A stretch of 63,854 bases of DNA, counting the filler, from Klebsormidium nitens (taxonomy: Eukaryota > Plantae > Klebsormidiophyceae): NCBI GenBank assembly GCA_000708835.1. It is 3 parts of 3 records of this genome, joined end to end, with 100 filler letters (N's around TTAATTAATTAA, not from the genome) between each part and the next. Parts side by side here need not be neighbours in the genome. Positions count along the whole stretch, not along the records: positions 31,217 to 59,042 come from DF237773.1; 2 more parts are not named here. The stretch is one strand, 5' to 3'. Shown piece after piece: positions 31,352 through 59,042 of the stretch. The first letter of the stretch is position 1. The number at the start of each line of letters is the position of its first letter. The notes below the pieces were generated by a model. That model was not told where the DNA came from. It was given only the letters and a program-made list of their open reading frames with translations, and did no database searches. The translations under genes and the position numbers were made by a program.

Positions 31352-32307
31352 TCAAACTCGCCTGTATACACGTTCTGCAATCTCGGCAGAGTGCCCCATA
31401 CTCGCAGCAACAGCCTTCCGCTTTTGCAGAGTCGTGTCGTCCTTGTAGAGCTCGCTCAGAAAGATCTTCCGGAGCATCCAGGACCCGACCCGTCTGTTCT
31501 CGTTCGCAAAAATCTGTGACGAGGTTTGCGACAAGTAGGCGGGGGTCATGGGAATGTCACCATCCTTTAGGTTGGAAAGCAAGTATTTCCTCGGGAAGAG
31601 TCGGAGGCTGTCGGAGATGACTTTTATTCAGGGGTTTCGGAAACACGTGCGTCTGATCGCCGTACGCCTTGTGTGTCTTATAGCACTTGTCTTAGAAGGA
31701 GGGTGTAGCAGCCAGGTGACTCTTCGACGAGCACGTTCGTGCCTTTTTCTGCTTCGGTTTGCTCGCGACCGTATGGGATGATCTTGACGTGCGCAAAGTC
31801 GTTACGCAATGGGCAGATTCTACTGTAGAGATTCAGGATCGCATGGTGTGTGATCAGCTTCCTGTCTTCGACGGTGATATCCTCGACATTCTTCACAACA
31901 ATCTTCTTCTTGATGGTTCGTTGAAGCTGCTTGATCTTATCACGAACGTCGTTGAAGGTTATCCAATTCTTCAACTCTCGGTCCGTTTTCGACTGTGCTA
32001 AGTTTTCGTTGTCAGAGATTTCCTTAACGCACTTTTCTAGCTCCTCTGAGTACTTCATGAGCAACTCTCCATCCTTGTTGCCCTTCAGAAGGACAATGAC
32101 GGGTACAATGTACAGCTTACGAGATGGGGCCTTGTAGTGTGAAAGGGATGCCATAACATTCTCCACGTCTTGCAACCAGTCCAAGTCAGAAAAGTAGTCA
32201 TCATCGGACTGAGTCACCATTCTGTGCAGACGGTTAAGAATCGAGATGTACTGAGTGACCGTTGTGTCGGACCTTTTGGGGCCGCTCAATAGGTTCCGTA
32301 AAACCAT
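31352..32307 (-). pseudogene. Tyrosine recombinase/integrase (OLV11-like), interrupted by two frameshifts
   Basis: Joined frames give CPLRNDFA (catalytic Arg), YKTHKAYG (Lys), MLRKIF, MGHS and RVY (Tyr) in the canonical order. Frameshifts near 31690 and 31625. Confidence 0.8.
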
Positions 32308-33937: not shown

Positions 33938-34330
33938 CTAACAGTTCTCTTCAAGGAACCGCAGAGCGGCCTTCTGCCAAGGTGACTTGGGGGACTTTGG
34001 TGATGTACTTGCATCAGCTGTCATGGATTCAAATTCACAGAAGGCATCGAATAAGGTGTTCTTGTCTGCTGCATCGTTGAGTGCTTCGGGTGCCGTGTAG
34101 GCCCTGCTGCACATGATTACTTCTTCCATGCGCCTGAGACCGTCGAGGAGAACCTTTGGTGCGTGGGCATTGGAAAGGGTGTCGATGAACTGTGAAGCAT
34201 AGTCTTCAAAGGTCAGCCTGTGTCTCGAAGAGGTCGTGTAAAAATGTTCCTTTGACTCGGGAGTGGGATCCATTCTAGGTTGTGGCCCAGATTTGCGTAA
34301 GTGTTGTGCGGACGCGCCATTTATTACCAT
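33938..34330 (-). CDS. Hypothetical protein (~110-130 aa)
   Basis: Intact ORF with protein-like composition in the compact block; no family recognised. Confidence 0.5.
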   Translation of the reverse strand: MVINGASAQHLRKSGPQPRMDPTPESKEHFYTTSSRHRLTFEDYASQFIDTLSNAHAPKVLLDGLRRMEEVIMCSRAYTAPEALNDAADKNTLFDAFCEFESMTADASTSPKSPKSPWQKAALRFLEENC

Positions 34331-34806
34331 TTTCGCTCAAACTGTCGCCCCTGTTATGTAACGGGGGTACAAGAAAATGCGATAAATAGCAATAATGCCA
34401 GAGTTAACTGGCTATCCCTCAGCCGCCCAGCGTCTTCGGTAGGCAGAGCCTGACCAGAGTAACTGGGTACTGAAGAATACTGTTCCTTTTTGTGGACACA
34501 AGTACTGATATTCCTATGCCATGCCATAGACCTCCGACCCAAATCCAAGCGACGCTGGTACATTGCACAAAGTGCAATCGCGCTTCAGGGAAGCTCAAAT
34601 ATGGGCCTTTTGATGGAGGTCTCATACCGTATGTTGACGGGGCACGCTTAGGACAGCACTAGCCACTCTTAGTCGGTAACAAGTGATGCTCATAATCAGA
34701 ACATACAGTACCCCCTCACAATTTTGAGGGGGGTTTGAACGCACTTTCCAGATCTTCAAGCGTTACACACCACAAGTGACACTTTCGAGGAAACTGGTAA
34801 TAATCC

Positions 34807-35247
34807 TTGCAGGTTCATATGGCGCAGTCGATTGCTTTTGGTAGAGTGGCCATGCCTGTACAAGCCTTTCGTGAGAGGGAGGAGAGGAGCTACCGAGTCA
34901 AGAGGGGGCAACTACCAGCCAGGGTGCACGTTTTGGAGTTCGGACAGGCCGTACTATGCAACCCCACCGGGATGCGGGATAACAAGCTGTGTGCAGTTGC
35001 GTTCCCGTCGAAGCCCCTGCTTCAGTCCGTGAATGCGGTTTTGGAAAACCAGTTCAGGATTGGGGATATGAGCACGGACGCCTTGCTGACTCACATAGAG
35101 ACCTTGCAAGATGTCGAGGGTGTTTTTGAGGTGAATGACTGCTTCTGCCAGTTGGAGAATAGGAAGACCTACTACATGGTCACTCAGATTCTCAATGAAG
35201 GCGATGAAGCATTCATCTCTGAAAGAGTTCTCGAATTTGACAACTGA
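34807..35247 (+). CDS. Hypothetical protein (146 aa)
   Basis: Intact ORF, co-directional and tightly packed with the next ORFs; no family recognised. Confidence 0.45.
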   Translation: MQVHMAQSIAFGRVAMPVQAFREREERSYRVKRGQLPARVHVLEFGQAVLCNPTGMRDNKLCAVAFPSKPLLQSVNAVLENQFRIGDMSTDALLTHIETLQDVEGVFEVNDCFCQLENRKTYYMVTQILNEGDEAFISERVLEFDN

Positions 35248-37077: not shown

Positions 37078-37639
37078 AGTGTCGCCGAAGTGATCGCTTG
37101 AGGCAATAAAAAAGGCGAAAATCGGCACCATATGTACTGTTCAGTTCTATTTGGGGTCAGGCGTTTTTGCATGTTTGCACTGCAATTTAGGCTGATATAT
37201 CGTCATTTGTTTCCAGGTAACACCGAACGTTCAGGTACAACAACGAACTTGTATCTAATCCGACGCGTGTGTGTGAGTAAGATGCATTTCCTTGAGGGTG
37301 CGCGGCAGCTAAACGTTCTAAAGGAGAGTATGAATCAAAGATGCGTTTATGTGTAAATCTCCAATGGTTCCATTTTCACAAGGTTTGGTAAGGTGAATCC
37401 CTTCATGAACCTCGGTTCAGAGCCCCACCTACTCGACAACCAAGGTGTGTTCTCCTTATTAACACGTGTTTTGTGCAGCATGTCCTGCAAGCTTTACGAG
37501 AGCAAAGACCATTGAGAGGGGTATCTGCACCAGAGCGCTGATGGTACATATGATGGTTTGTGTAGAATAGAAGTATGATGCCACCTATCAACAGAGATTT
37601 GAGATGATTGGAGTGCTCGCTGGAGGTTTTCCTAATTTA

Positions 37640-37945
37640 CGTTGTGGTGAGATCGGAAGCTTTGGATTGTTAATTGAGCGGCCCTTGTGCTATCCATTTA
37701 GTAAGTGCCCGAATCTTAGCCACCTCTCGGTACGTTGTATGTTCTCGGTAGAACCGCATCTCGTCCAGATCATCCACGATTTCGTCAACGTTCCAATTCT
37801 GATGTATTTGTTGCACGCGCGCGAGTACTTTTGTACCTCGACTCCATGTTTAGATAGACGTGCATCCTGCAAAGTAAGCATAGCAACTATGTCTTCCGAA
37901 GACTGTCGCCCATATAAGTATGGTTCCAATTCTGACAAAATCTTC
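37640..37945 (-). pseudogene. Truncated, diverged copy of the 3' part of the F-box/XPA-like gene at 44904-46187
   Basis: ELEPYLYGRQSSEDIVAMLTLQDAR...VEVQKYSRACNKYIRIG versus ELELYLYGRQSLKDILAMLNLQDAR...LEVQKYSRTCNEYIRIG. Confidence 0.85.
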
Positions 37946-38619
37946 GGAATTTTGCGTGTATCTGCGCTGACCATGCCATGAAGTCAGTCAGTGCACACTC
38001 TCGTATGTTCTGATCTTGCTTTAGTCCGCATCTACATGCGACCGTTTGGTACCGAAGGAAAACTGATCATCCTCATTTAGCTACGTAAACCTACAGAGTG
38101 AACGAGGATCCCTGCTGAAAGTCTCCACAATGAAGTATGGGACGACACTCATGATGTACGATATCATCCATAACTGCGTGATTATAAATATCAAATGGTG
38201 TGTGCAGCTTGCATGCACTTGCAAATCCTCTACATGCCTAAAACCGATGGCAACAGGGGACGGCTCTATGGCATTATTCTTCCTCAGGTCGCCGTACTCC
38301 TTTCTGCGTCTCTTGGCTTCTGGCACGTCAAGCAGCCTGTTCTTGATGTCGTCCATGTACACGCTCTAAGATATGCCTGCATACTATCCGGCATCTGAGC
38401 GAGGTCCTTCAGCACGCTGGGCGGCGGCATAAGTGCCAGATCCACCGCTTGGGCGGTTGAAGTATTTCTTGAACGCCACCTCGAACGTGGCACGCACGGC
38501 TTGCCCGTATCCGTCCAACATGTCAGGCACCGTGAGTGAAGGGGTGTGCCCTTGCTCTCCTTGGACCCCTTGACCTCAAAGTAAACTCAGCCTCCCTTCG
38601 GTCCGTGCCTCTCTGCACT

Positions 38620-38810
38620 TGCACCACTTGGTACTCGGCACAATCTGCACCACCCGGTACTTGGCACCACCTGCACCACCTGGTAATTGGCACCACCTGG
38701 CACCACACCTGGCACCACCTGGAACTTGGCACCACTCGGTGCCTCGGTGTCTGTTCCTCGGTGCCTCGGTGTGCCTCAGTGCCGTGCGATGATGGTGCCT
38801 GGTGGTGCCT
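38620..38810. repeat. GGCACCA(C) minisatellite followed by complementary GGTGCC units
   Basis: About 8 (G)GCACCAC units at 38620-38736, then CGGTGCCT/GGTGCC units to ~38810. A similar array lies at 33546-33612. Confidence 0.75.
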
Positions 38811-38998
38811 GTTACGACTATAAAGCACGCCTTTGCCATTCATTTTCATTGATCACTCGTTTTCGAAAAGCGTTCGAGCTTAGGGAGTTGAGGGGGTGCG
38901 CTTTGGAGGCGTAGGAGCGTCGGAGCCGGCCGCGTTCTTTGATAAGGGTGAGTCTACATACATAGAGATTCTTCACCTGGTAGCAAGCCAGAAACTTT

Positions 38999-39350
38999 GT
39001 ACTACATCTACTGTTATAAATTTCTCACACATTTCGGGTCTACTCAATCATTTTGGAAAGGGGGGGATTAGGTACATACAGATTTCCCAACCTCTGCCGA
39101 TCTCGAAAAGTCGTACTACGTCTACTGTTATAAATTTCTCACACAGTCTCTCTCTTCCGAAGAGGCGAAGAAATTTATAACAGTAGGTGTAGTAGGTTTC
39201 TTCTTCTTTCCAAAGGAGTAGCGAATATGTATATACGGACTTTTGTGTAAGAAAATTATAACAGTAGGTGTAGTAGGTTTCTTCTTCTTTCCAAAGGAGT
39301 AGCGAATATGTACATATGATAAGAACTTTACAACAGAAGGCATAGTAGGT
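38999..39350. repeat. Array of a ~27-bp motif in direct and inverted orientation (candidate origin/iterons)
   Basis: TACTAC(A/G)TCTACTGTTATAAATTTCT at 38999 and 39113. Reverse-complement copies at 39169 and 39250, and a degenerate copy at 39322. The 39169 and 39250 copies sit in an 81-bp-period direct repeat. Confidence 0.85.
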
Positions 39351-39421: not shown

Positions 39422-40610
39422 CAGCAGCATCCGGTTGTCGACTTCCGACGAAGAGGTGCGCACCAAGCAAAGTGAGAGACATTCGCCGACGTTCCTTCCA
39501 AGATCAGCATCCTTGACTTGATTGCTTCCGTCATGGGGGCGTTGAACCCTAGGCGAACCGGATCTGAACTATCCAAAAAGTTCGAGGACCAAGGCGTTAC
39601 CGTTTGTAACGCCCTCGCTCCGTTTGCAGGGCGAGTTCAGCACGAGATGTCGGTGACAGGTATACGGGGCGTGGTTCGGGCAGAACGTTGCAGACCGTCT
39701 CATCCTCAAGGATGGACCCAAGCTCCGCGACTTCATTTCGACGCATTGCGACACCGGTGAAGGGTTGCTCGTTGCACGCCGCGAGTTCAGGGGTGCATTT
39801 CAAGCATGGCAGGATGGAGAACCCGTTCCTCAAGGCCTACCCGATGCTATGAACGCATTGGGCTACGTTTCTTCGACGAGGGCATATGGTACGAATAGGA
39901 AGTCCACCGGGGTCTACGTCGGCTTAGGCCTGCGCTCACAGCAGCATCCGGTGGTCGAGGTCGAGACCGCCGCTCCTGAACCTGACGTCGAGGAAACCTC
40001 CGGCGAAGAGGTGCGCGCCCAGCAGAGCGACCGGGACTTGGTCCTCGACAACCAACTCTTTGGCGAGTTCCGAGGTGCCAGGATGAGGAAGACTGACGAC
40101 GTGCCCCCCAAGATCAGCATCATCGACCTGATTGCTGCTGTGACTGGGGCCTTAAATCCCAGGCAAACCTGGTCCGAACTATCCAAAAAGTTCGTGGAAG
40201 AAGGTGTCCATTTTTTTGGACACCCTCGCAAAGTTCCCAGGGCAAGGGCAAAACGAGAAGCCGGTGACGGATGCAAGGTTGTGGTCACTATCATCAACCG
40301 TTTGGGTGGGCACCGAATCAGGAAGACTGACGACGTCCCGCCCAAAATCAGCATCATCGACCTTATTGCAGCTGTCACGGGGGCCTTTGAATCCCAGGCA
40401 CACCCTGTCCGAAGGTGTCCAGGTTTTGGACACCTTCGCAAAGTTTCCAGGGCGAGAGCATAACGAGAGGTTGGTGACGGATGCAAGGTTGTGGTCATCA
40501 GCCGTTTGGGTGGGCACCGGATCAGGAAAACTGACGACGTGCCCCCCAAGATCAGAATCCTCGAATTGATTGCTGCTGTTACCGGCCCCTCGGGCCCCCG
40601 GCCCCTGTGA
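39422..40610 (+). pseudogene. Frameshifted gene: four Bro-N-like repeats plus a P4/D5 primase C-terminal winged-helix-like domain
   Basis: RKTDDVPPKISIIDLIAAVTG repeated at ~39488, 40083, 40317 and 40520, with FPGQGQNEKPVTDAR in an alternate frame. LRDFISTHC...FRGAFQAW...LGY...GVYVGLGLR at ~39720-39935. Confidence 0.6.
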
Positions 40611-40692: not shown

Positions 40693-42461
40693 ATGGGAGA
40701 GCATAGAGAGATGACAGAGGAGATCGTGCTGCTGCCGCCCCAAGAGCCGCATGTGACGCGGCTCCTGAATATTTTACGCCATCATGCATTTGCTCTGGAC
40801 CTGTCCGCGCTTGGGGCTGGAAAGACGTTCTCTGGTTCGAAGATCGCACTCGAATCGGGCCTGCCCAACGTAATAGTGATCAGCCCCGTCTCGGTCCAAC
40901 CAAAATGGCAGGAGATGCACGAGAAGTATGGGGTGCCGATCAGGCACAACCTCAGCTACTGTGGCGTCCGTTCGGTCAAGGGGAAGCAGCCCAAGCACGG
41001 GCTGCTATCTCGGCGGGACTACACAGTGGACGTCACGATGCCGCGAGGACCTCCCCGGCAACTCGAGAAGACGGACTTCCAAGTAACGGACACCTTCAAG
41101 TTGCTCCTGGGAGAGGGAGTTCTCCTGATCGTGGACGAGATGCAGCACCTCAAGAACGTCTCGTCACAGTTTGCCGCCTGCCAAACACTGATCAAGGCGG
41201 TCACGGATTCGTACGAGGCCGGGGGGCGCTCGAGGGCGCTCTTGCTGTCCGGAAGCCCAATCGACAAGCAGGAGCAAGCCGTCACTCTCTTTCGGACCCT
41301 GAACGTCATGCAGCACCCCGATCTGTGTAAATTTAACCCAGGCACCAGGGTCATGGAGCTGCGTGGGGTGTCGGAAATCATCGATTTTTGCCAGGGGATC
41401 GACAATGTTGCCACCGAACGGATCCTGGCAGCAAAACGCTACTGGATGTGTGCTGAGAGCGTGATTCGGCCGATGTGTTACACCCTGTTCCAAGAGGTCC
41501 TGAAGCCGAACCTCTCGAGCACGATGCCGCCCTTGCGCTGGCCGGTACTCTGCTCAAACTCAATGCATTCTACCGGATTGACGACGAAGAGGATCGGAAG
41601 GCCCTGTCGGCTGGCGTGCAAGCCTTAGAGTACGCCGTCCATTACGATCGACGGACGGGCCGAGTGAGCATGGCCGAGGGGGCTGATTCACTGCGTGCCC
41701 TGTGCGCTGCCCTGGTGAAGATCGAGAGCTCCAAGGTTCGAACGTTCGCCCGGGTGGCTCTCAAGGCGCTACGGTCGAACTCTCAGCAGAAGGTTGTCAT
41801 TTGCGTCAACTACAACGACTCCCTGCAAAGCCTGCAGGACTTATTAGCTGCTTACTCGCCGCTGGTTCTGAACGGCGCGGTGCCTAAGCAAGAACGGAAG
41901 CACATCATCGACAAGTTTCAGCTTCCGGCCGATGAGCACAGGGTGCTGCTGGGGAACGTCTCCGTCTGCTCAACGGGCATAGACCTGGACGACAAGGACG
42001 GTGCGTGGCCCCGGCTGGCGTTGATCAGCCCAAACTACAGCACTCTGACTCTGTATCAGCTGGGCCACCGTTTTCAACGGATGGACACCAAGTCGGAGGG
42101 GACAGTGCATATGGTATTTGCAAAACATGCGCATGAGTTGCCGATCCTCAATGCTCTCTCGAGAAAGGGTGCTGTCATGAGAGAGACGACGCCGGAGCAG
42201 GTGAATGCCGGCATCAAGTTTCCCGGTGACTTCCCAAGTTGGGTCGAGGAAGATCTGGAGACCTCGCTCATGAGGAGTGGATTCAAGGGATTCAAAGCGA
42301 ACAGGGAGCGGCGCAAGTGGGCACGAAGTGTGATCGGAAGTGCGCTCATGGAATGGTCGCTTCGACCAGGAGGGGTTCTCTATAGGCTGGCCATGAGACG
42401 GTTTGAAGCGTGCAAAGTAGATAAACTATCCATGCCAGACAATATAGGATGTCCGTTGTAA
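40693..42461 (+). pseudogene. SF2 (DExH/SNF2-like) helicase of giant-virus type, split by one frameshift near 41530-41560
   Basis: LGAGKT (I), LIVDEMQH (II), LLSGSP (III) in the first frame; VICVNY (IV), STGIDLDD (V), QLGHRFQR (VI) in the second frame. Confidence 0.85.
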
Positions 42462-42709
42462 TCAATGGCGCCCGACGTATGCATAGGAACACAGGGCAAT
42501 CCAGCTAACTGGTGCTAACTGGTGGTAACTCCAATTCTGATAAGACCTTGGATTTTTGCCTGCAATGCATGTATCTGCGCAGACCATGCCATGAACAGTG
42601 CACACACTCTCGTATGTTCTGATCTTGCTTTAGCCGCATTTGCATGCGACCATTTGGTACTGGTGGAAGCTCATGGTGGTTTGCTACTTACGGACATGGT
42701 GACTAGTCA

Positions 42710-43407
42710 ATGGGGCAAAGAATGGCAACATCTGCTCCCGTTTGTCGAGCAACAGTTGTTGTCACTTGCAACCAATGTGGCAAGCGACTCATGCTCAAGG
42801 ACTCGTTCAGCAAGAGCATGAGGCAGAACGGAACATTGGTGTCGGTGTATATCTGCTCCATGGAGTGCTTGTGTGTAGTCGGGGGCTGCGAGCCGATCAA
42901 GGTTGTACAGTTTGCCAACACGGCCTGCTACGAGTGCAGGGGGAAGGTACCGTTGAAGATATGGGAAGGCAAGATGGTTTAAGAGCTCAAGCGCCTCGGA
43001 TACGAGTACAGCTATTATGACTCACTCGTCCCGTGCGCTCAGGCGAAAGGGATCAAGGGGTTCAGACCTGACTTCATCTTTGTCGGCAAGGACTTTGTGG
43101 TCATTCTCGAGGTGGACGAGGATATGCACCGCCACTACGAATGTCGTGCGAGGTGGGACGGATTGGGGACATCAAGGATGCCGTCGAGCTCCCTCTCCTT
43201 CTCATCAGGCTCAACCCTTCCGAAGGCCGCATCAAGATGCTAGAAGAGACAATGAAGTGGGCGCTCTCAATGGGAGACGCTGTCAAGGCAGCACAGGACG
43301 CAGGGCTCATTCTCGCTTATCACGGGTATTCGGACGGCAGGAGGGCCGAGCTTCACAAGCAGATGGTCAGGCAGAACGGCTTTGCATACGAGACCATTGT
43401 TCTGTAA
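42710..43407 (+). pseudogene. Zn-finger plus PD-(D/E)xK-like endonuclease, with a premature stop (42980-42982) and a frameshift (~43140)
   Basis: Reading through the TAA gives ELKRLGYEY...FRPDFIF...VILEVDEDMHRHYE; the shifted frame continues MSCEVGRI...LLLIRLNP. This is the RPD...LEVDE..H..Y..CE..R...IR.NP signature of NCLDV endonucleases. Confidence 0.75.
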
Positions 43408-43499
43408 CCGGCACAACACTGTTCTAGGAGGCCTCTGCGCCACCTCCAAAGTCGGTGCGGATGAAGCCTCTTGCGCTGATTGGCGGCCGCCTCTCTCGA

Positions 43500-44873
43500 T
43501 CCTCGTTGTGAGATCGCCACTCCCACAGCAAATGCCTACATGGGTACTATATCTTCGTCCAGAGAAAACCGGTCGCCGTGCTGCCCATCCTCGTGGCATA
43601 ATCCACTTGTTGCCACGACAGGTCATTCTTCTCAGCGGCCTCTGCGATCGTACTATATGTCTGCAGGAGCTTGCCCTCGAGATCGTGCTTGCGGACGGCT
43701 CTGTTAATTGTCCGGTTCCGATTTTGTTCCACCCTGGTCGCCCAGCGGAGGTTCCAGATCACGTCCTGGTCACAAATTCCATCGATGTGGTCGACCGTGT
43801 GCTCATCACTAGGGGGCGGACCGATGAAGGTGTGGGCCATGAGATTATAGACGCAGACAGTAACACGCTTCCCGGCGATCTGAAGCTCGACCTTATGTCG
43901 CCCGCACACGATGTTGCCCTCCGTGCGCCTCCCGTTGCTCAATTGAACGCGCCCCAAGCTGCTGACCCGTATGCTTCTGAGAACCCGCCCATCCAGCTTC
44001 GCATCCTTCCATTCTTCGCTAGGCCTGTCCGCTTGATCTACAACATGCACCGAGCACCTGAAGAACATGTAGCCACCGTACTCCTTGCTTGAACCTCCCT
44101 GGATGCACTTCTGCATCGTCTTCCTGTCGAGCCCCAGAGTTGATGCGGCGTCCCTGATCGAAGAGTACCGTTCCTCTTTGCTGCTCGCAACATGACGTAC
44201 AATAATTGGGAAGCCTCCGGTCACACTCCGCTTCTGACCCGACCCAGGGTTGTCCCTTGCGGTCTTCCGCTGGTGTTCCGGCCGCGTTAGCTCTTGAAGG
44301 TTTGCCCAGCTGTCGTTCTGAAGGGGCCGTTCCGACCCGTCCTCCGGTTTGGGCGAAGGAATGATGTGGTCGATCTCCATCCCGGGAGAAATCGCGCGCC
44401 CATGGGCGATCTCGAAGTTCAGGCGGTGGCGCTGGATCATCTGCCCGTTGATGTTGAACTGGATGTAGCCACTTTTAAATCTTCCCTTCAAGAAGCGCCC
44501 GACTTCACAACTCCAGACGCTGCCGTCAGGGAGCCCGTATATATTCATGAACTTGTAGTGCTGCTTCCAACCGTCGTAACTTGCTGGTGGCGCATTCTGC
44601 TCTGAATGCGAGCGGGAGTGGCGTGTCAGGTACCGCTTGTCAGTAAAAGTCTCACCACAGCCCACGACGTTGCACACAAACCTCCTAGTATCGGCGACCT
44701 GGCCGCGCTTGCGCTTGACTCCGGCCGTGACGCTCGTGGCAGCTGTAGAGCTTGCCATCAATGACTGCTGCTGAACCGTGGCACCCTTTGTTCCTAAGTC
44801 AGGTTCAAGTTGAAGGAAGCACTCCCAGGCACTCCAAGGAGCATGTATGGGAGTGGCGATCTCACAACGAGGA
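43500..44873. repeat. Perfect 26-bp inverted repeat pair (43500-43525 and 44848-44873) bracketing the HNH-NUMOD gene
   Basis: TCCTCGTTGTGAGATCGCCACTCCCA at 43500 and its exact reverse complement TGGGAGTGGCGATCTCACAACGAGGA at 44848. Confidence 0.9.
43547..44758 (-). CDS. C2H2 zinc finger plus double HNH/NUMOD homing-endonuclease-like protein
   Basis: Intact ORF, likely start MASSTAA at 44758. KRKR; CNVVGC...HSRSH (C2H2); HRL...IDHI...NLQELT (HNH); YSSIRDAA (NUMOD1); EEWK...VSSLGRV (NUMOD4); VDHID...NLRWAT (HNH); YSTIAEAA (NUMOD1). Confidence 0.88.
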   Translation of the reverse strand: MASSTAATSVTAGVKRKRGQVADTRRFVCNVVGCGETFTDKRYLTRHSRSHSEQNAPPASYDGWKQHYKFMNIYGLPDGSVWSCEVGRFLKGRFKSGYIQFNINGQMIQRHRLNFEIAHGRAISPGMEIDHIIPSPKPEDGSERPLQNDSWANLQELTRPEHQRKTARDNPGSGQKRSVTGGFPIIVRHVASSKEERYSSIRDAASTLGLDRKTMQKCIQGGSSKEYGGYMFFRCSVHVVDQADRPSEEWKDAKLDGRVLRSIRVSSLGRVQLSNGRRTEGNIVCGRHKVELQIAGKRVTVCVYNLMAHTFIGPPPSDEHTVDHIDGICDQDVIWNLRWATRVEQNRNRTINRAVRKHDLEGKLLQTYSTIAEAAEKNDLSWQQVDYATRMGSTATGFLWTKI

Positions 44874-44903
44874 CAAGGAGAAACACTAGGTGCATCACCC
44901 ACC

Positions 44904-46187
44904 TTAATTCTGGTGGTGCAGCAGCCTAAGCTCTACACTACCCAACCTTTGTTCCGAAGTTTGGGTTCTTCCAAGCTTGCGCTGTAGAGAGATCGGAAGC
45001 CTCGGGTCATTGCTTGACCTCCCTTGTGCTATCCATTTAGTAAGTGCCCGAATCTTAGCCACCTCTGAAGAACTATAGAGCGTCTCGGTCCAGTACGTTG
45101 TATGTTCTCGGTAGAACCGCATCTCGTCCAGATCATCCACGATCTCGTCAACGTTCCCTGCACCAATTCTGATGTATTCGTTGCACGTGCGCGAGTACTT
45201 TTGTACCTCGAGTCCTCGTTCAGAAAGAGCCTCTGCCAGCTCTTGCTTTCGTGCATCCTGCAAATTAAGCATAGCAAGTATGTCTTTCAAAGATTGTCGC
45301 CCATATAAGTATAGTTCCAACTCTGTCAGGAGTATTTTTTCTGCACGTCCCCCAAGATTCTGCCAAAGCTTTGATGCTCGAACTGCAACTTCGCAGTGGC
45401 GCTCCAACCCCCCTTGCACGTAACTATGTCGTGCGTGGGCAAGGGCGAGGCCGAGATCTCCAGTGCAATGTGGTGCTGCTGATGCAAAGGACATGTACCG
45501 CCGAATCCTTTCCTTGACTCGTTTCTGCCCACCGATTCCATTTCTCACGTAATCAGAACAGGATGCAGAGTACATGAGCTCACGGTTGTGCTTACCTTCT
45601 GGATCGCTCTCGTTCATAAGCTTTACGGCCACGTCTGTTCGAAGCCTCCTCGGTTCACCGCGTTTCCGCTGCTTCGACCGCGAGGCATCCTCAGCAGCGT
45701 TCAGCCCCCCAGGGCCACCGTACTTGTCCAACGAAGCAGTAAGAACGTCTTGCCATCTGTACATACGTATATTGTTGTGGTATGCGCGGTGCAGTGTTTG
45801 GAATACAGGGCAAAAGCTCAGATCCTGGTCATCAAGGAGAAGCTTTTTCTTGCATGCTGAGTGGCTCAGCAATCTGAGGTGTCCTGGTCCGTTCTCCGCC
45901 GTGCAATTCTGGCAGGCATTGATGGCCGGGTCAAAGGGATATACCACCCTCGTCGAACGTTTGCATCCATCACAAGGCCGCAACGTTCCGGTCACTCTTT
46001 GTACCTTTGTACCTGGACTTCTCGTCCTCATACCTTCCTCGTATGCTTTCTTCCGTTTAGCCCAGCCATCCAGTGCCACGTTCCGAAACGCCCGCGAGAT
46101 CGGGGCGATTTGGAGGAGCAGGCGTGGGTCAGCTGACGCACGCTCAAATAAAAGGTCAGGGAGTACATCTACTAGCTCGCCGGCCAT
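44904..46187 (-). CDS. F-box-like N-terminus plus XPA/RAD14-like domain and a C-terminal helical domain (427 aa)
   Basis: Intact intronless ORF. LPDLLF...ISRAFR (F-box-like); CDGC...CQNC; LLSHSACKKKLLLDDQDL...YRWQDV...KYGGPGGL (XPA C-terminal-like). Confidence 0.6.
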   Translation of the reverse strand: MAGELVDVLPDLLFERASADPRLLLQIAPISRAFRNVALDGWAKRKKAYEEGMRTRSPGTKVQRVTGTLRPCDGCKRSTRVVYPFDPAINACQNCTAENGPGHLRLLSHSACKKKLLLDDQDLSFCPVFQTLHRAYHNNIRMYRWQDVLTASLDKYGGPGGLNAAEDASRSKQRKRGEPRRLRTDVAVKLMNESDPEGKHNRELMYSASCSDYVRNGIGGQKRVKERIRRYMSFASAAPHCTGDLGLALAHARHSYVQGGLERHCEVAVRASKLWQNLGGRAEKILLTELELYLYGRQSLKDILAMLNLQDARKQELAEALSERGLEVQKYSRTCNEYIRIGAGNVDEIVDDLDEMRFYREHTTYWTETLYSSSEVAKIRALTKWIAQGRSSNDPRLPISLQRKLGRTQTSEQRLGSVELRLLHHQN

Positions 46188-47837
46188 ATCTGTGGCTGCA
46201 TTTTAGTTGCTACTGGTCGCCCGCGCAAATTCCTAAAGTGCGGCCCGTTTTTTTGAGTGCAATATTTTAAAGCATGTCCGCCCAGCTTTCAAGCTGTTGA
46301 TCATCATTTGCAGCTCGTCAACCGTCTTCTGTGCGATCGGGGCACTCGTCTTATCTGCGTCTTCTGGACTGCACAAGTATAAGAAGTCATACCGCATATA
46401 CACCACCATGTGGCAGTGGGATCGTGAACTAGCCGGCATTGACACCTAAACCCGTATATATGCGATGGAAGCCAATGGCCGCACTGGCTACGGCATATTG
46501 TAACGAGACTATGTGCATGCGCTCCGATTTGATATACAATTCACAAAAGGACATGCAGCTGGCATCCTTACTTTGGTAGCTTACGTGCGCACATGCTATA
46601 TTGCACTGAGAGGTCAAGCTACATTGCAGCTCCAAACATCTTGATTAGAAATGTGCAGTTTGCTTCAGATACGATCTCGGCCTTTTTTACATCCATCTGC
46701 TGAAGCTTGGCATCTATTGCACCTATAATGCAAGCGCTAGGATATCCGGAATATGTAAACCGATATAATGATTGTCAGATTTTGACAGATAGAACGTGGG
46801 GCTTCATATGATGCATTATAAGTGGTGCCGCTGCACTCGGTCGCACAATTACCATGTATTATACATTTCATAATTGCATTGAAATTACATATGTCTATAA
46901 CACAAACAATCATGTACAATATGGGCGCGCATGAGCGGATCATTGATACAACTGCTGATGTTGATTATATGTGCTATCTCGGTTTTTAGATTGTTGCCAA
47001 ACATTTGGCGAGGGGCATGCATGTAGCTGCGAGCTTGAAGAGGGGCATGCACTAGTTCAACTCTGTAGAACAAACGTGAAATCTTGGAATGAACAGTGCA
47101 AAGATAGTGTCAATAACACTATCTGGCAGGACATAATGCAACCCCCTTAACACCCAATCTCGCCAATACAGTTCAACGTTTCCCTATGTTCGCACTGCCA
47201 ACTCCCTTGCACCACATTTGGCATGTGTGGCTTGGAGCAACGCTACCATTTTTCCATTGAATGCACAGATCACCTTCACCGTAACCATGTGTTGACAAGC
47301 TCGACCCCAAGAAAATTCCCGCTTGCCCCCGTTCAGGATCGCACCAGATCCCTTGCGACCCGTCTCGATCAAACGCAATCAAACGCCAAAATCAAACATT
47401 TAACCCAAAGGTAAGGGAGTGACAGAAACGGAAAACCCCTTACGCCCTCAGCAGAAGTGGCAGCAAAGGTCACAATTCAAACGACACGCTTGATGAATGA
47501 ACGCATCCTGCCTGGCTCCAGGACTTTACGTGTGAGAATAAAGACTGCCCAGTGTGTGCTCTATGGTACATGAGTAGCGACCACTAAACAGCAGTTCGTT
47601 AGGAAGCTCACGTGTTTTGACAACCAGTTAATTGACGCTTGGAGCATATCCTCTCCATCTATAAAAACCAGAACAAAAAAGCATTAGCGCTAGTGCATCC
47701 GCCCCCAACTGGCCTTTGCGAAAGGTGAGTCCTGTCTACTTCCAACATAATGTCGGTCCGCGTGCCCTGCCTGCCATCTGCCTGCCTGTCCTAGTGCCTA
47801 TCCTGCACAGATTGGTTTCCTATGCCCCATGCAATTC

Positions 47838-49231
47838 TCAGCACTCCTTGTAAATACTACTCAGCACTTTCAGCTTCTCCAGTTGGTCCCCTTTGGCCAG
47901 CCCTGGCTTAACATAGCATATCTGGTAAACCGGTTTCCAAAGCTCCTTCTCCCCAAACTCCAGAACCTGCCGCCACTTAGGGTCCTTCCGCCGCAGCATA
48001 TCCGCCACCTCGCTCGTCTCCTCGCACGGCTCCAGGATCAGCAGCCAAGTCTCCTCCGCCGCACCAGGCCTCTCCCTCACTTTCCGCACACCCACTATCG
48101 TGCGCGAGTGCCCTTGTTGCTGAAAGTAGAGCGGCGGTTTGTCCACCACTCGCACCTGGGGCTGTCTGCAGTTCCCGTCCTTCCACTTCTCATCCGCTTT
48201 CAACCCGTCCGTGAAGTAGCGCCAAACCCACTCAAACAGCCTGGTGTGCCGCACGCCGCGCTTGGGGTCTAATTGGGACGGCGCTTCCCCCCCCTTGGAC
48301 GGCGCGGCGTTGTCCGCATCGTCCGAATTTGAGTCAGGAGCCTCCACCCGGATGAAGTGATTCAGCCTGCCCACAGGTTGCTTTGCAAACTCCTTGTCCA
48401 GGGCCTTCTTACAGTCCCCGCAGACGTTGTAGTCATCCTTCACGTTGCACTTGTAGTAGTGCTTGCCCAGGGTTTTGTTGCACCGCGCGCACATGTTCTT
48501 CTTGACGTTGTCCTTTTGACCTGACCCGGTAACCACGGACGTCTCCAGGACGTCGTCATCCACGTTCCCAGCGCGCAATTTGATGGCTGCGGCGGCATCA
48601 AACTGCACTATGCAGGCTCGCACGCCCATAGACCTGAGAATCACCGCGCACTCTGTGGTTCCAATCCACTTGGACGTCCCCACAATCTTCCAGTCTAGCT
48701 GGTCCGCTCCCTCCACATCAAACCCAATGTTCCAAGCGGCCTCTAACCATTGCTGCAGGCAGGCAATGTCTGGGACGACCGCCTTGCCTGGGTAATGCTT
48801 GCAGATCTCCTCGTTGCGCAGCAGGTTGGATAAGTACATCTGGATGTTGCGCCAGCCGCAGCCCCACCCCTCGTCCTCCCCCCTGAGACACCCAAAGTGA
48901 TCCACGTTCATGCAGATAACCGCCTTGCTCTCAGTCTTCCCCTCAGTCAACCGCTCCTCTAACAGATGCATTAACCCCTCTGGAACCTCCACAAACCCCT
49001 GCTCCAGCTGCTCAAACCTCCCCAGTCTCCCGTCCATCCTTGCCCGGTGTGCGCAAGAGCTCTCCTGCGCCGTCTGTAGTTCATTACCCTATCACAAGGT
49101 AATGGCGCGCATGGCAGCAAAAAACTAGACCAACAGCCCAGGTCTTCGATGTTGCTGGAAAAGCAATCCGATACCTGAGAACTAGGGACAACGAACCGGT
49201 TGAAAAATTCGTCGAACAGGGTTCCAGCCAT
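47838..49231 (-). CDS. ZUP1/ZUFSP-like peptidase family C78 (Ub/UFM1-type deconjugase) with an inserted ZZ-like zinc finger
   Basis: DEGWGCGWRNIQM (catalytic Cys), WIGTTE, PLYFQQQGHSRTIVG (His), LLILEP. A probable short first exon 49231-49175 joins at 49064 in phase 0. Confidence 0.85.
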
Positions 49232-52248: not shown

Positions 52249-52286
52249 AAACGCCCTGAATTTTCACGTGAAAATTCAGGGCGTTT
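52249..52286. repeat. Perfect spacerless 38-bp palindrome
   Basis: AAACGCCCTGAATTTTCAC|GTGAAAATTCAGGGCGTTT. Confidence 0.9.
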
Positions 52287-53038
52287 GTTCGCTCCTTAAG
52301 GTTATGAAAGCGGTTATAGTTCCCTGCACGGGTGTTTCCAAACACTTCTGCTTGGTTACAGGGTTGCATCTGGATTGTCACGTCGTGGTTATAGATCGGT
52401 ACAAGTCCTGTTCTAGACAATATAACCAATGTCTATGGATCTGAAAACGATGTCCGGCCTGCTGAGCTCTCCGTGCGCGGATCGGGCGAGCATGGCCCTG
52501 CAGAGCAAGCAGAGGAGTCTGGGCACGTTCATGTGAGTAACATAGGTACGATTCGATGCGACAAAAAAATATCGGACGGTCGCTCAAGATGCGTGCATAC
52601 ATGCAATTAGGGTGGGAATCCACATACTACGACATACAGTCTGTCCAAGTGAAATGGCACACCTCGCCAATCGTAAGTCAATGCAAGGATCCTGAGCAAC
52701 AATGGGTCTTCAATGACTGTATTTGGCAGGCGCGTGACGGTATTGATCCCGGTTCTTTACCAACGGCTGATGGGTCATCACAAGGCCCGATGATAGCGCG
52801 TCTCATTCCATTCAGCCTGAAGCTGTTGTAGAAGCACAATCGCACAGTCGCATCAGCCAGATCAGATCATAGGCACCTACGTTATCATAGAGATGCCCGG
52901 TCAAACTGCAGCTGTAGCTATGCTGGTGCCCGCAATAGGTACTGCGAAAACAGCAGATCTGCATACACCACTGTCAATTGCATGAGACTATTCATGCATG
53001 TACTCAAGTTCAATTGTCACAAGAGCTGTGTAACTTTC

Positions 53039-53640
53039 TCATATCCAGGGCAGTCCTGCTAGACGGCCTATCTTCTCCACGAGTTCCTTGGGTATCAACC
53101 ACAACTTCTCTAACGCAACAATTACTGCTACTTGTTTCCGGACCACTGATTCGGCAAGCTCTAAGGACTCCTTATCCAAGCAGACGCCTAGTGTCCGTGC
53201 AAGCCGAGCGCACTTTGGCCCAGAAACAGCCAGGCCTGGTCTCAGGATGCGGCCAAAGTGCCCCTGCTCCAAGAGCACCCGAAAGAGGAGCATGCAATCA
53301 TCTCGAATTGCGAGGCCACCAACATCCTTCGTCAACCCACATTTTTCAAATGAGTTGACATCTGCGCCTCGGCTCAGCAGCAGCTCGCAGACTGCACTCT
53401 GCCCTGCCATAGCAGCGCAGTGGAGCCCCGTCCAACCCTCTCCATCGGCTGCGTTTATGTCAGCCCCCCGGCCCAGCAGCAGTTCGCAGACTGAACTCTG
53501 CTCTGCCGCAGCAGCGCAGTGGAGCGCCGTCCGACCCTTTCCATCGATTGCATTCACATCAGCACCCCGGCTCAGCAGCAGCTCGCAGATTGCACTCTGC
53601 CCTGCTATAGCAGCCCAGTGGAGTGCCGTCTGACCCTTCC
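53039..53640 (-). CDS. Ankyrin-repeat protein (at least 3 repeats), 5' end lost in the gap
   Basis: Three 33-aa repeats G(Q/R/W)T(A/G)LHxAA...CELLLxRGAD(V/I)N. Confidence 0.88.
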
Positions 53641-53660
53641 NNNNNNNNNNNNNNNNNNNN

Positions 53661-54311
53661 GGGGGCTGCCCAGCACAGTCTATCAATCATATCCGAAGGA
53701 ATACTTGTGACGGTTGCAACTACGACATTTCCGCCCACAATGCTGCTCGAAAGAAGGCAGCAGAAGAGACGAAAAAAGTGAAGATTCCGGCGCTCCCTGT
53801 CGTTCTGAAAGCAGCAAGCCGGGAGGTTGCGAAACTGCACAAGCTCGGCTGCTCAGTCTCGCTTATGGTGCAAACGCCTAGAACAAGAAAGCAGGCAACC
53901 CAGTGGTACTTTGACTCTGCCAGCACCAAGGGGAAAGCATCCTTGGACAAACACAAAGGGTATTTCAGGAAGGCAATGAAAAACGAGGTCGAGGGGGAAG
54001 TCAAGGTGGAAGAAGGTGCTAAGTCGAGTGAAAAGGTCGTCGACGCGTCGGAGCAAAAGACTGTCAAGCCCACGGGTGCCGGGTCGGCCAACTTATTTAT
54101 GCTACCTGCAAATCTTGAGGATCTCGTGAAGGGGTTTGGTGACCTCTACCCGGAGACTGTGATTGACACAATGCTAACGGCTTTGAAGAAGCATTACATA
54201 GATTCGAAGACCGCAAAAGCGTCAGTGGACATAAGTGCATTGCAGAGCATCTTTGGCAAAGATTTGCTTGGCCCTTCCCTCCGCTTCTTGAGTAGTGTCA
54301 AAGAGTTGTAA
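53661..54311 (+). CDS. Hypothetical protein with an N-terminal Zn-ribbon-like motif, 5' end lost in the gap
   Basis: The frame is open from the gap edge: GGCPAQSINHIRRNTCDGCNYDISAHNAARKKAAEETKKVKIPALP..., contiguous with the tracked ORF 53778-54311. Confidence 0.5.
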   Translation, partial: GGCPAQSINHIRRNTCDGCNYDISAHNAARKKAAEETKKVKIPALPVVLKAASREVAKLHKLGCSVSLMVQTPRTRKQATQWYFDSASTKGKASLDKHKGYFRKAMKNEVEGEVKVEEGAKSSEKVVDASEQKTVKPTGAGSANLFMLPANLEDLVKGFGDLYPETVIDTMLTALKKHYIDSKTAKASVDISALQSIFGKDLLGPSLRFLSSVKEL

Positions 54312-55698: not shown

Positions 55699-58600
55699 TC
55701 AAGCTCCACCACTTACGGTTTTCAGAAGGTCCTCAATTTCCTGCTCCGAGAAATAACCTACGGTTCTAAGTACATCTCGAGAGAGGTCGGGGAGTTGCTC
55801 AACGCTCAAAGCGCACCTGAACAACCGATGCAGAAACGACGAGAGACCCAAGCCCACCAAACGATCCGACAAAGCCCGAAAACGGGCCAGTTCTGACACT
55901 TCCAGCCGTTCGTGCGCTTGAGCAAACTCTTCCTCAAGTCGAATCCCGGAGGTCGGGTCCGGAGATTCAGGCACAGTGCACCCCGCCGTTTGAGTCTCTA
56001 GAGGGGCGAACGGGAATGTCGCCTTCGCCTCCCCAAGCCGAGCGACCGCTGCTGTTCTAGCTTTGGAGAGAAGGGCCCTACAACCACTCCTCACGACCCT
56101 ATCGTTTCTAAGACGGTCTTGAGAAACCCAGTATCTTGGGAGCTGATTCTCTTGCCTGTCGGACTCTCCCTCAGGACCGATGTTGTCTTCCAACGAGTGA
56201 CCGTCGAGCCTGTTTAGAGCCTCTATTCTGCTGCTAAGGTCGCTTACTATATCGGAGTAATAAGCTAAGACACTTCTTTGCTCAGCCGCTAAAAGGCGTG
56301 TCTCTTCTCGTAGGCGTTGTAAGTAGTTGAATGCTTCGACGACTTCCACCTTCCGCTTGAAGGCGACTGTCTTCTGCCTTCGGGCTCCCACAACAAGCAA
56401 CTCCTCCGGCCGGCCCTCAAACTGCCAAGGCAGCTGCGCACCAGCTAACAGGTCCGACGCGCTCGCCGGGTCTCGATGCTTCCTTGGGTCCCCTTTCTGG
56501 ATGACTACATTGTACCGACTGACGGCTGCTTCAACCTGCTTCTTGACCTCGCCCTCTTTCTTCCGCATCGACGCGCGCATCTTCGCCGAATCGGCTTCGC
56601 TCGCTATCCTTAACTTCGACTTTTCCAGACTGTGCAGGAGAGCTTCGATCTCGACTTGCAGTCCTGAGATGGTGTCCTCAGCCAACTCAGTCCTACTTGC
56701 TTCGAGCACTCTTTGTCTCGCTTCTTCAGAAACCCCGGGCTCCGCCTCCTGACCGAAAAGTTCTCGCTCTAGTTCTTTTACTTTCTTCTCTTTTACGTGC
56801 AAGTCTCTTGTCACCTCCGCGGTGAGCGAACGGACCTGCTGCACGGCGTCAGAACAGAGCAGGTTGTCCTCGAACGACTCCGACTGCCGGAATGCTTCAA
56901 GTTCGCGCGCGGCCTCGACCTCGGTCACTAAGGTGAAATACTTTACAGCCGCGCTCGGAGCTCGCGATGACCGGTTGAGTTGCTCCCTTGCAACCTGTTG
57001 CACCTCGCTTTTCCAGTCTCGAAACTTCTGGAGGGGGATTTGGGAGGCCGACATCTCGAGCATCTCTTGACAGAGTCGCTCCAACTCTTGCGCAGCTTCG
57101 ACTGTCCGTGTTTCGTTCTGGTCCATCCTGCATGAAGGAGGAGCGGATATTCGATTCAGCAAGAGATCAAGCAGGGATTCGCTTTAAAAATATGCTCAGA
57201 ATGCATTGCTTGAGTGTCGATCGCTCGAAGCAGGGTGGTCCGTAAACTACTCCGTATTGTCCTCCCCAAGAGTCTTGTTATAACCTGACGCGCTGATCAC
57301 AGGCTTGCTGACGACCTGACGTGCCAGAACGCCATAAGATGAACCTGATCCAGATTGCATACATTAAAGCAAGCGTAACTTGATTCGAAGAGAAAGCAGA
57401 GAAATGAATCAAAAGCTTCGCAACTCTTTGAAGGGAGTTGCAGAGGAGAGACGCTCTATATACTGCCTTGCCTACTTGCGGTTTCTACGGATTCAAAACC
57501 GAATGATGCAAGGCGGCGTGGTCGAAGTAGCGAATGCGAAGCGAACCTTCTAGCCAACGACTGTGCCATCCTGGCCCGCTTGTCCTCGTTCCAGTACAGG
57601 GTGGCCTTGGTGATGCGCTCCGCCCTCCCTGAAAGTCACATTGAAGAGTCGGTTCGTGAAAGAATGTTACAGTCAACTGGGAGATCGAAGAAGACACCGT
57701 CTAACGAAGATTGAAGGGGCCTGCACTCCGGTCCAGATTGTTGTGTCCTGAAAGCCATGCTGCCAGGTCGAGAGGGCCCGCTCTGGTGGTCCGACAAGAA
57801 TGAAGCTGGTGTGAACAACTGCTCGAGCAACACGACAAAGAAAGTGTCCACAGCGGACAGATTTGGAAGGAAAATTCTTCGCATGCCGAACAAATATTAC
57901 GCTTTCAAAAGCTGCATGCGACTCTCATGCTGGACCCATATTCTTGGTCACAAGCCCGAACCTTGACATGTAGGAGAAGTACATCTCCATGTCCTCCCCG
58001 GATCCTGCTCCGGCCCCATCCTGCCACCGGCCTCCAAAGACGGCCTGCCAACATGGAAGACATACGATGAAGGTTCCTTAGAACATTGACTGCCGTGCGT
58101 GTAAGCTCAAAGCCAGATGCAATCGGAAGCTGTTTCGAGAATTCGTGGTGACGGCATGCACTCGCAAAATCAGCAATGAGACTGGACAATTCGGGGAGGT
58201 TCGTCAAAGAACTTTGCCCCCACGAGCAACCCGTAGATGATGCAATTTCTCAAACATCGTTCAAAAACCGCATGTTTCGACCTCGTTCTGGAGAAACTCG
58301 TCAAAGTAAAGCCACGCACTTGCTTGAAGCTCGATACAGGATATCAATCCAGCCTACCGATGATTCAGACGCCTCAGTCTAGATAAACCCCATCGAAAGG
58401 AGAGTACCTCAGGCTTGTGATCACAGTCCGGCTAGTTTTGAAAGCAAAGTCTTCTTAAATAATGATACCTGAGACTGAAGAAACACAATAGGAACTCAGA
58501 ATCATGGCAGATGATTCAACGGCAACGAGATGAGCTTGCGGGGCCCTGACCAAAACACACTAGGTTGCGCTCCCTTTCATGGTCGAGCTGACATGGTAGC

Positions 58601-59042
58601 TTTTGCAACGGGAACCTGAGTTGAAATGCCGGCATACCTAGCACTGCCAGGAATGAAGCTTTCCGTGCATGATGTTGAGTGCGGGCTTGGTGCTGCCGCT
58701 CTCCGACCCTTCCCCCATCTGGTCCAGCGCCTTCTCGCGCCACGGCCAGTACTTGCACACGATGTCCTGCCAAAAGAAGCGTGGGTGCCGCCCCTGGATG
58801 AAGTGGCGGTCCAGGAAGTATGTGTAGCCGAAGCGCTCCCCGGTGCGGACAAGGTTAACCGCCTTCATGCCTACCTGATGGCGGCAACCACAAAACACCG
58901 CCCCCGTCTCAGCCTGGCCCCGGATGGCGCTCCGCGTGTCTCGGGCTGCTTTCCACTCCCCCGTCCCGCACTGCACGTCTGGCCGCCGAACCCCAAGCTG
59001 CAAATCGAGCGCTTCTAGAGTACGCAGGACGCCTTCGTCTTC
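55699..59042 (-). mobile_element. Kyakuja-Dileera-Zisupton (KDZ) transposase, spliced and decayed; 5' part in the gap
   Basis: ETGAVFCGCRHQ...GERFGY...QDIVCKYWP...MHGKLHSWQC (58638-59003), GGRWQDGAGAGSGEDMEMYFSYMSR...TKNM (57928-58044), and a long 3' exon with RLREETRLLAAEQRSVLAYY (55699-~57130). Confidence 0.8.

Follow-up and report, generated by a model that had tools for sequence, protein, structure and literature searches.

The window, a stretch of 63,854 nt analysed as a whole, includes a 27.8-kb piece of Klebsormidium nitens record DF237773.1 (pos. 31,217–59,042), in which an intact gene for a 403-aa I-HmuI-like tandem HNH-NUMOD endonuclease occupies positions 43547–44758. The gene is read on the minus strand from an ATG at 44758 to a TAG at 43547, lies outside any intron or intein and sits between convergent gene ends. 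Its left neighbour, convergent with it, is a broken plus-strand gene (42707–43407) recognised by six-frame reading, which contains an in-frame stop and a frame change; a PD-(D/E)xK-like motif was assigned to it by eye, and searches of Pfam and PHROG returned no match. Further to the left is a frameshifted viral-type superfamily 2 helicase gene (40693–42461, plus strand), 77–79% identical at the amino-acid level to the intact gene of locus L016, which adjoins an HNH homolog on the same strand. The right neighbour is a minus-strand gene for a 427-aa protein without assigned function (44904–46187). All broken genes were searched as separate pieces. Exact look-ups of ten proteins encoded in the window returned no match. 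Close homologs of the endonuclease (45–66% identity) were present on two further K. nitens scaffolds, one of which also carries an NCLDV capsid gene, and other homologs were located on environmental contigs with PCNA, dNK, Bro-N, ribonucleotide reductase and YqaJ genes. Judged by their sequence, the surroundings of the cassette are a decayed endogenous giant-virus (Nucleocytoviricota) segment in K. nitens; NCLDV inserts in Klebsormidium have already been published (PMC5294986).

Analysis of the 403-aa protein revealed an N-terminal KRKR motif (residues 15–18; 44705–44716), a basic motif that is kept in most close homologs and is a possible candidate for a nuclear localisation signal, and a C2H2 zinc finger (44606–44680) that matched Pfam PF00096 just under the curated cut-off (E 1.6e-4) as well as C2H2 structures in PDB. 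These are followed, all on the minus strand, by a first HNH (beta-beta-alpha-metal) domain (approximately 44249–44440; D130, H131 and N153; PHROG HNH), a first NUMOD1 or I-HmuI-type helix-turn-helix DNA-binding domain (approximately 44054–44209; Pfam PF22083, I-HmuI_NUMOD-like, and alignment with I-HmuI), a second HNH domain (43709–43975; D323, H324 and N336; Pfam PF13392, HNH_3, E 2.9e-9, and I-HmuI 1u3e) and a second NUMOD1 domain (approximately 43559–43705; Pfam PF07453). The C-terminal NUMOD1/helix-turn-helix region was recognised by PF22083 and PF07453, with the secondary structure of a model consulted in addition. PHROG HNH profiles matched both halves of the protein, and the DH and N residues of both HNH motifs were invariant or nearly so among 14 homologs. 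The sole significant fold match in PDB was the homing endonuclease I-HmuI, which was matched by sequence too, and the best viral fold matches were giant-virus HNH proteins. The protein is an ordinary free-standing HNH-NUMOD endonuclease of the I-HmuI-like type that is common in Nucleocytoviricota. It shares tandem HNH and NUMOD1 modules, a free-standing gene and a viral neighbourhood with the enzymes of that group (EsV-1-119 and the HNH proteins of Marseillevirus, Pithovirus and PBCV-1) and with phage I-HmuI (PDB 1u3e), whereas the N-terminal KRKR motif and C2H2 finger and the bracketing duplications described below set the clade of the window apart from them.

The endonuclease gene is enclosed by two perfect inverted repeat arms of 26 bp at 43500–43525 (plus strand) and 44848–44873 (minus strand), which are complementary at 26/26 positions and lie 1322 nt apart. 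One arm is located downstream of the endonuclease stop codon after a gap of 21 nt, and the other upstream of a promoter-like motif, 89 nt from the ATG. The pair is the longest perfect inverted repeat of the K. nitens piece, and the chance expectation for such a perfect pair in 27.8 kb is about 9e-8; a search of the window at up to three mismatches found just the two arms, and none in 100 shuffles. No transposase was found within the repeat-bounded unit, and no target-site duplication of at least 3 nt was found for any plausible pair of ends, save one 3-mer that requires trimming of the arm. An earlier note on this DNA had described an intact C2H2-HNH-NUMOD-HNH-NUMOD gene with a KRKR motif, exact 26-bp inverted repeats at these distances from the stop and start codons, and the absence of an internal transposase and of an obvious target-site duplication. 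Each of these points was borne out, the gene by the 403-aa ORF, the Pfam and PHROG matches and the conserved DH/N residues, and the repeats by their low chance expectation (about 1e-7). A resemblance of the arm to positions 45213–45238 in the 427-aa gene was considered as a possible copy and rejected (19/26, p 0.3). As separate observations, the middle of the upstream arm (44855–44867, minus strand; noted together with L007 391–405) resembles the start context GAG-ATG-GC seen in many homologs, except that ATC stands in place of ATG, which may be due to chance; and at 44820–44855 the inner end of the same arm has a local 8-bp inverted copy 20 nt away with a small hairpin nested in it, an arrangement that could serve as a template-switch substrate.

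Inside the repeats, 40 nt before the ATG, lies a CTTAGG motif (44793–44798, minus strand). Every endonuclease copy examined exhibited a CTTAGG-like motif 39–44 nt before its ATG, and CTTAGG also precedes the helicase (40658) and YqaJ genes. The same motif was observed about 35–45 nt before the starts of several viral genes in the window and in L002–L007, L016 and L019. From this recurrence, CTTAGG is probably a promoter of the Klebsormidium-associated giant-virus clade. Since the motif is located inside the arms, the unit consists of a promoter plus an ORF, and the earlier note was correct in seeing here a mobile free-standing endonuclease gene in a unit delimited by the repeats.

We compared the cassette with 11 other copies at ten loci, including the sister copy L002 and two more in K. 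nitens. The 26-mer was present in none of the 11 copies (best 9–12 mismatches) and was absent from all 19 loci collected and from IMG/VR; neither its 19-nt core nor a back-translated peptide pattern had a match in IMG/VR or the collected loci, and the cassette DNA gave no match to phages. The sister relationship of L002 was supported at 95/91, and this copy has different neighbours and no flanking repeat. The 23-nt inverted repeat at the ends of the L002 sequence (1–23 and 5582–5604), which begins with what we take to be SMART-type library adapter sequence, was discarded as an adapter artefact. The earlier note had proposed a new TIR-bounded mobile unit and had itself set homologs without the repeats against that proposal; such homologs are largely what we found, and with the 26-mer in 0/11 other copies and a sister copy lacking any flanking repeat, terminal inverted repeats are unsupported as a family trait. 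The unit is not a demonstrated new TIR element. At least eight distinct gene neighbourhoods were seen around the endonuclease gene, which is thus mobile, though without conserved ends. When viral, metagenome and genome collections were scanned for related loci, only distant HNH genes were obtained and no related locus for the 427-aa gene or the helicase, and consequently no empty allele. The single homolog of the right neighbour, in L017, diverges before the arm: the homology of the 427-aa gene to L017 and to a paralog in the window stops at about 44960, 85 nt short of it. With no empty or un-inverted allele found, either insertion or inversion may have given rise to the arrangement at this locus.

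Examination of the flanks revealed that six of the 12 copies are bracketed by a duplication, and that this duplication is different at each locus, the perfect 26/26 inverted pair being that of the window; the duplicated stretches at the other loci come from neighbouring or coding-like sequence. With the window left out, four of nine independent loci are bracketed, two by inverted and two by direct duplications. The L001 pair is inverted (32/40), with the upstream arm falling within the N-terminal coding sequence, where it takes the place of the KRKR region; the L006 pair is also inverted (51/65) and represents a piece of the downstream gene with its copy 530 nt away. L004 and L016 contain direct duplications of pieces of the genes on either side, which probably derive from one ancestral event, and the bracket of L019 is an ordinary tandem duplication, direct and 1.3 kb long, that includes part of YqaJ. 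The boundaries of the brackets on the 5′ side differ (−71, −90 and −107), with the CTTAGG motif always retained. Control intervals of the same length at the same loci were bracketed in 0–0.9% of cases in BLAST comparisons. The frequency of four in nine loci corresponds to a binomial p of 2e-5 at a background of 2% and of 6e-4 at 5%, and that of three in nine within tight 200-nt flanks to 6e-4 and 8e-3, respectively; these p-values are optimistic, since the control intervals overlap and are not gene-anchored.

On balance, and with confidence somewhat better than even, we favour the interpretation that the 26-bp repeats are a young repair scar left by a gene that moved or flipped, specific to this locus, and not TIRs of the family. 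A free-standing endonuclease gene with its own viral promoter would change position within the genomes of the virus lineage with no transposase involved; the movement or flip would start from nicks or staggered breaks, for which the module's own two HNH domains are a plausible source, and repair of the break by fill-in, template switching or end joining would duplicate the stretch at the break. Direct duplications would result from insertion or unequal crossover and inverted ones from staggered-break inversion or fold-back, and the 26-bp repeats of the window would be the youngest such scar, still perfect. The repeats would lie so close to the gene since, where genes are densely packed, a rearrangement persists only if it leaves promoter and ORF intact. 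It is plausible that the nuclease takes part in producing the duplications, which we infer from their co-occurrence alone, and the 26-bp repeats may copy its cut site.

Inversion of the cassette is plausible in view of the helicase: the HNH gene is oriented opposite to the helicase in the window and lies on the same strand as the helicase in L004 and L016, two earlier branches of the clade. This argument is weak, since the window does not have the same gene between helicase and HNH as those two loci. Staggered-break inversions that leave inverted duplications are an established mechanism (PMC1885836). As in the Drosophila inversions described there, unique sequence is duplicated in inverted orientation at both ends of the segment without a target-site duplication; the unit in the window differs in being a single gene in viral DNA, in encoding a candidate nicking enzyme and in being a putative inversion. 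A purely random origin of scars does not predict the core (12/15 nt) that is common to the arms of L001 and of the window.

This core bears on a second interpretation, which we regard as possible though unlikely. In it, the arms would be a site that the nuclease itself recognises or cuts, or else a terminal motif, in degenerate form, shared within a sub-family; the gene would land at copies of a defined site or be bracketed by them, and the unit would be a nuclease-driven element with inverted ends. Self-recognition sites for the nuclease were among the possibilities raised in the earlier note, and the core is a modest hint towards them. L001, from the same host genome, is the only other tightly inverted-bracketed copy, and its downstream arm shares the 15-nt core (12/15) in the same gene-relative orientation, with a shuffle p of 0.0075 for that arm before correction; however, the match was noticed post hoc, p rises to about 0.03 once arms and orientations are counted, and the other L001 arm reaches only an 8/10 match (p 0.2). 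Both arm sets start with TCC. The sites of I-HmuI-type enzymes are roughly 25 bp long, and the arm length of 26 bp is close to this. On the other side, nine other copies, the sister L002 among them, are not flanked by a paired core, and the upstream arm of L001 lies within the coding region with the promoter outside, which fits poorly with a functional terminus. An intact site beside an active nuclease gene would moreover be self-destructive unless it is bound without being cut. The recognition-site interpretation is compatible with the repair scar provided that the sequence duplicated is the one the nuclease cuts. In its most elaborate form, a two-domain HNH nickase would cut a defined site on both strands and repair would duplicate the site, leaving the gene between inverted copies of its own recognition sequence, represented by the core common to the window and L001; the result would be a transposase-free giant-virus element able to relocate or invert at non-allelic sites. 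We consider this form improbable. The arms nevertheless provide a concrete 26-bp candidate substrate for the two-domain HNH enzyme.

The gene may instead have landed in a pre-existing palindrome or between the opposed, remnant ends of paralogous genes, with recombination or conversion homogenising a 26-bp core that can flip the cassette. Other parts of the piece, as well as L003 and L017, do contain perfect palindromes and short inverted repeats, and the brackets of L001 and L006 resemble diverged paralogous coding pieces. In line with such an origin, about 60 nt outward of the arms are weakly similar to each other (anchored p 0.04–0.2, local p 0.05–0.15), but this extension was non-significant under most scoring schemes, the inner flanks of the arms exhibited no similarity, and searches with the arm gave no homolog at the protein or DNA level. 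We therefore judge this origin to be rather doubtful.

It appears very unlikely that the unit is a non-autonomous TIR transposon or an invertible cassette on which a transposase, or the product of the nearby tyrosine-recombinase-like gene, acts in trans. The perfect terminal repeats are of TIR-like length, and the same piece contains both a recombinase-like gene (31355–32307, minus strand) and pieces of a KDZ transposase (55.7–59.0 kb). Relative to DDE transposons, however, the unit has terminal inverted repeats without a target-site duplication or termini shared with other copies; it is single-copy, and these termini are missing from the two further K. nitens copies of the family. Nor is any working transposase or recombinase linked to the unit, since the recombinase-like gene and the KDZ transposase are both broken. 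The former, which is recognised by an R-K-RK-H-Y motif order and lies 11 kb from the cassette, had no Pfam or PDB match and a weak match to a PHROG integrase (E 0.017), and a low-confidence structure model gave non-significant matches to XerH. All 231 aa of its pieces agree with K. nitens GAQ91640.1 (KFL_008240010), a gene model that bridges the same break. The gene may represent a recombinase family of this virus clade that has escaped annotation. Within the 26-mer only weak dyads were seen (at best 5/8 pairs), none of them clear, and an intact cognate recombinase, as expected of a tyrosine-recombinase invertible cassette, is missing because the candidate is broken in this genome copy. As to the suggestion of the earlier note that the cassette was moved or inverted by the element's recombinase, inversion is plausible, given the helicase orientation, and a role of the recombinase is weakly supported. 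Intact relatives of the 31355–32307 gene, 314–316 aa long and 62–92% identical, were observed in metagenomes (P0261–P0268), without Pfam or PDB matches. The Kyakuja-Dileera-Zisupton transposase pieces extend over 55699–59042 (minus strand), with a Pfam KDZ match (E 3e-12) at 58641–59042, and are cut by the edge of the piece.

An assembly or library artefact can practically be dismissed: the scaffold is a short-read-era draft with an N gap (53641–53660), and L002 does contain adapter-made terminal repeats, but the arms are internal, intergenic and unlike adapter sequence, and mis-assembly flips segments between existing repeats without creating repeats.

Comparison of the unit with known systems revealed partial likenesses. 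HEARO or IscB-type RNA-guided HNH elements were not matched, as no RuvC profile match was obtained and an Rfam search of 42400–46400 returned no structured RNA. Free-standing homing genes of phages (T4 Seg/Mob; intronless homing) likewise consist of a selfish nuclease gene with its own promoter between unrelated genes, and when they move, the flanks are conserved and discrete boundaries are lacking (PMC13565253). KolobokP DNA transposons combine a His-Me finger nuclease with a DDD/E transposase, and their beta-beta-alpha-metal nuclease has been proposed to drive duplication via cleavage and unequal crossover (PMC9587614); the unit in the window, in contrast, has no transposase, no long terminal direct repeats and no conserved termini, and its host is viral and not animal. 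No paper on free-standing HNH genes bounded by inverted repeats was found in the limited literature searched.

Homing accounts only for spread at a fixed site, and to our knowledge there is little documentation of how free-standing homing endonuclease genes come to occupy new, non-allelic positions. If the brackets are repair scars, about half of the copies in the clade would keep such a scar, one of them still perfect, as direct footprints of moves to non-allelic sites, which would bear on what shuffles gene order in giant viruses. What is new is that bracketing duplications are in excess across the clade, possibly as a footprint of arrival at new sites. If the scars reflect generic viral recombination, the cassette would be no more than a small inversion holding an ordinary viral nuclease gene.

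Several further features were noted in the piece. An ankyrin-repeat gene (53005–53686) is 83% identical to L001 5678–6704, which there lies 4 kb from the HNH copy, and an intronless ORF for a peptidase C78 (ZUP1/UFSP-like; Pfam E 5e-41) occupies 47838–49037 on the minus strand. A perfect, loop-free palindrome of 38 nt is located at 52249–52286. A dispersed non-coding motif that starts with TTATTACC forms a diverged inverted pair at 34321–34459 and 34761–34812, and motifs of the TTATTACC type were also observed in L001 (11650–11705), L002 (4307–4342) and L017 (3533–3668), with 88% identity over 138 nt to L017. A paralogous fragment of the 3′ part of the 427-aa gene (37625–37937, 76%) is joined to a repeat (37925–38060) that recurs after the helicase (42530–42668) and three times in L001. 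Short tandem repeats of the GCACCAC type (38616–38735) precede a cluster of direct repeats (81- and 114-nt periods) and inverted repeats with 18-bp perfect arms at 38938–39339, which is origin-like or element-end-like in appearance. Between this cluster and the helicase, at 39476–40600, lie three to four degenerate, frameshifted copies of a KISIIDLIAAVTG-type coding repeat, for which Pfam returned no match.
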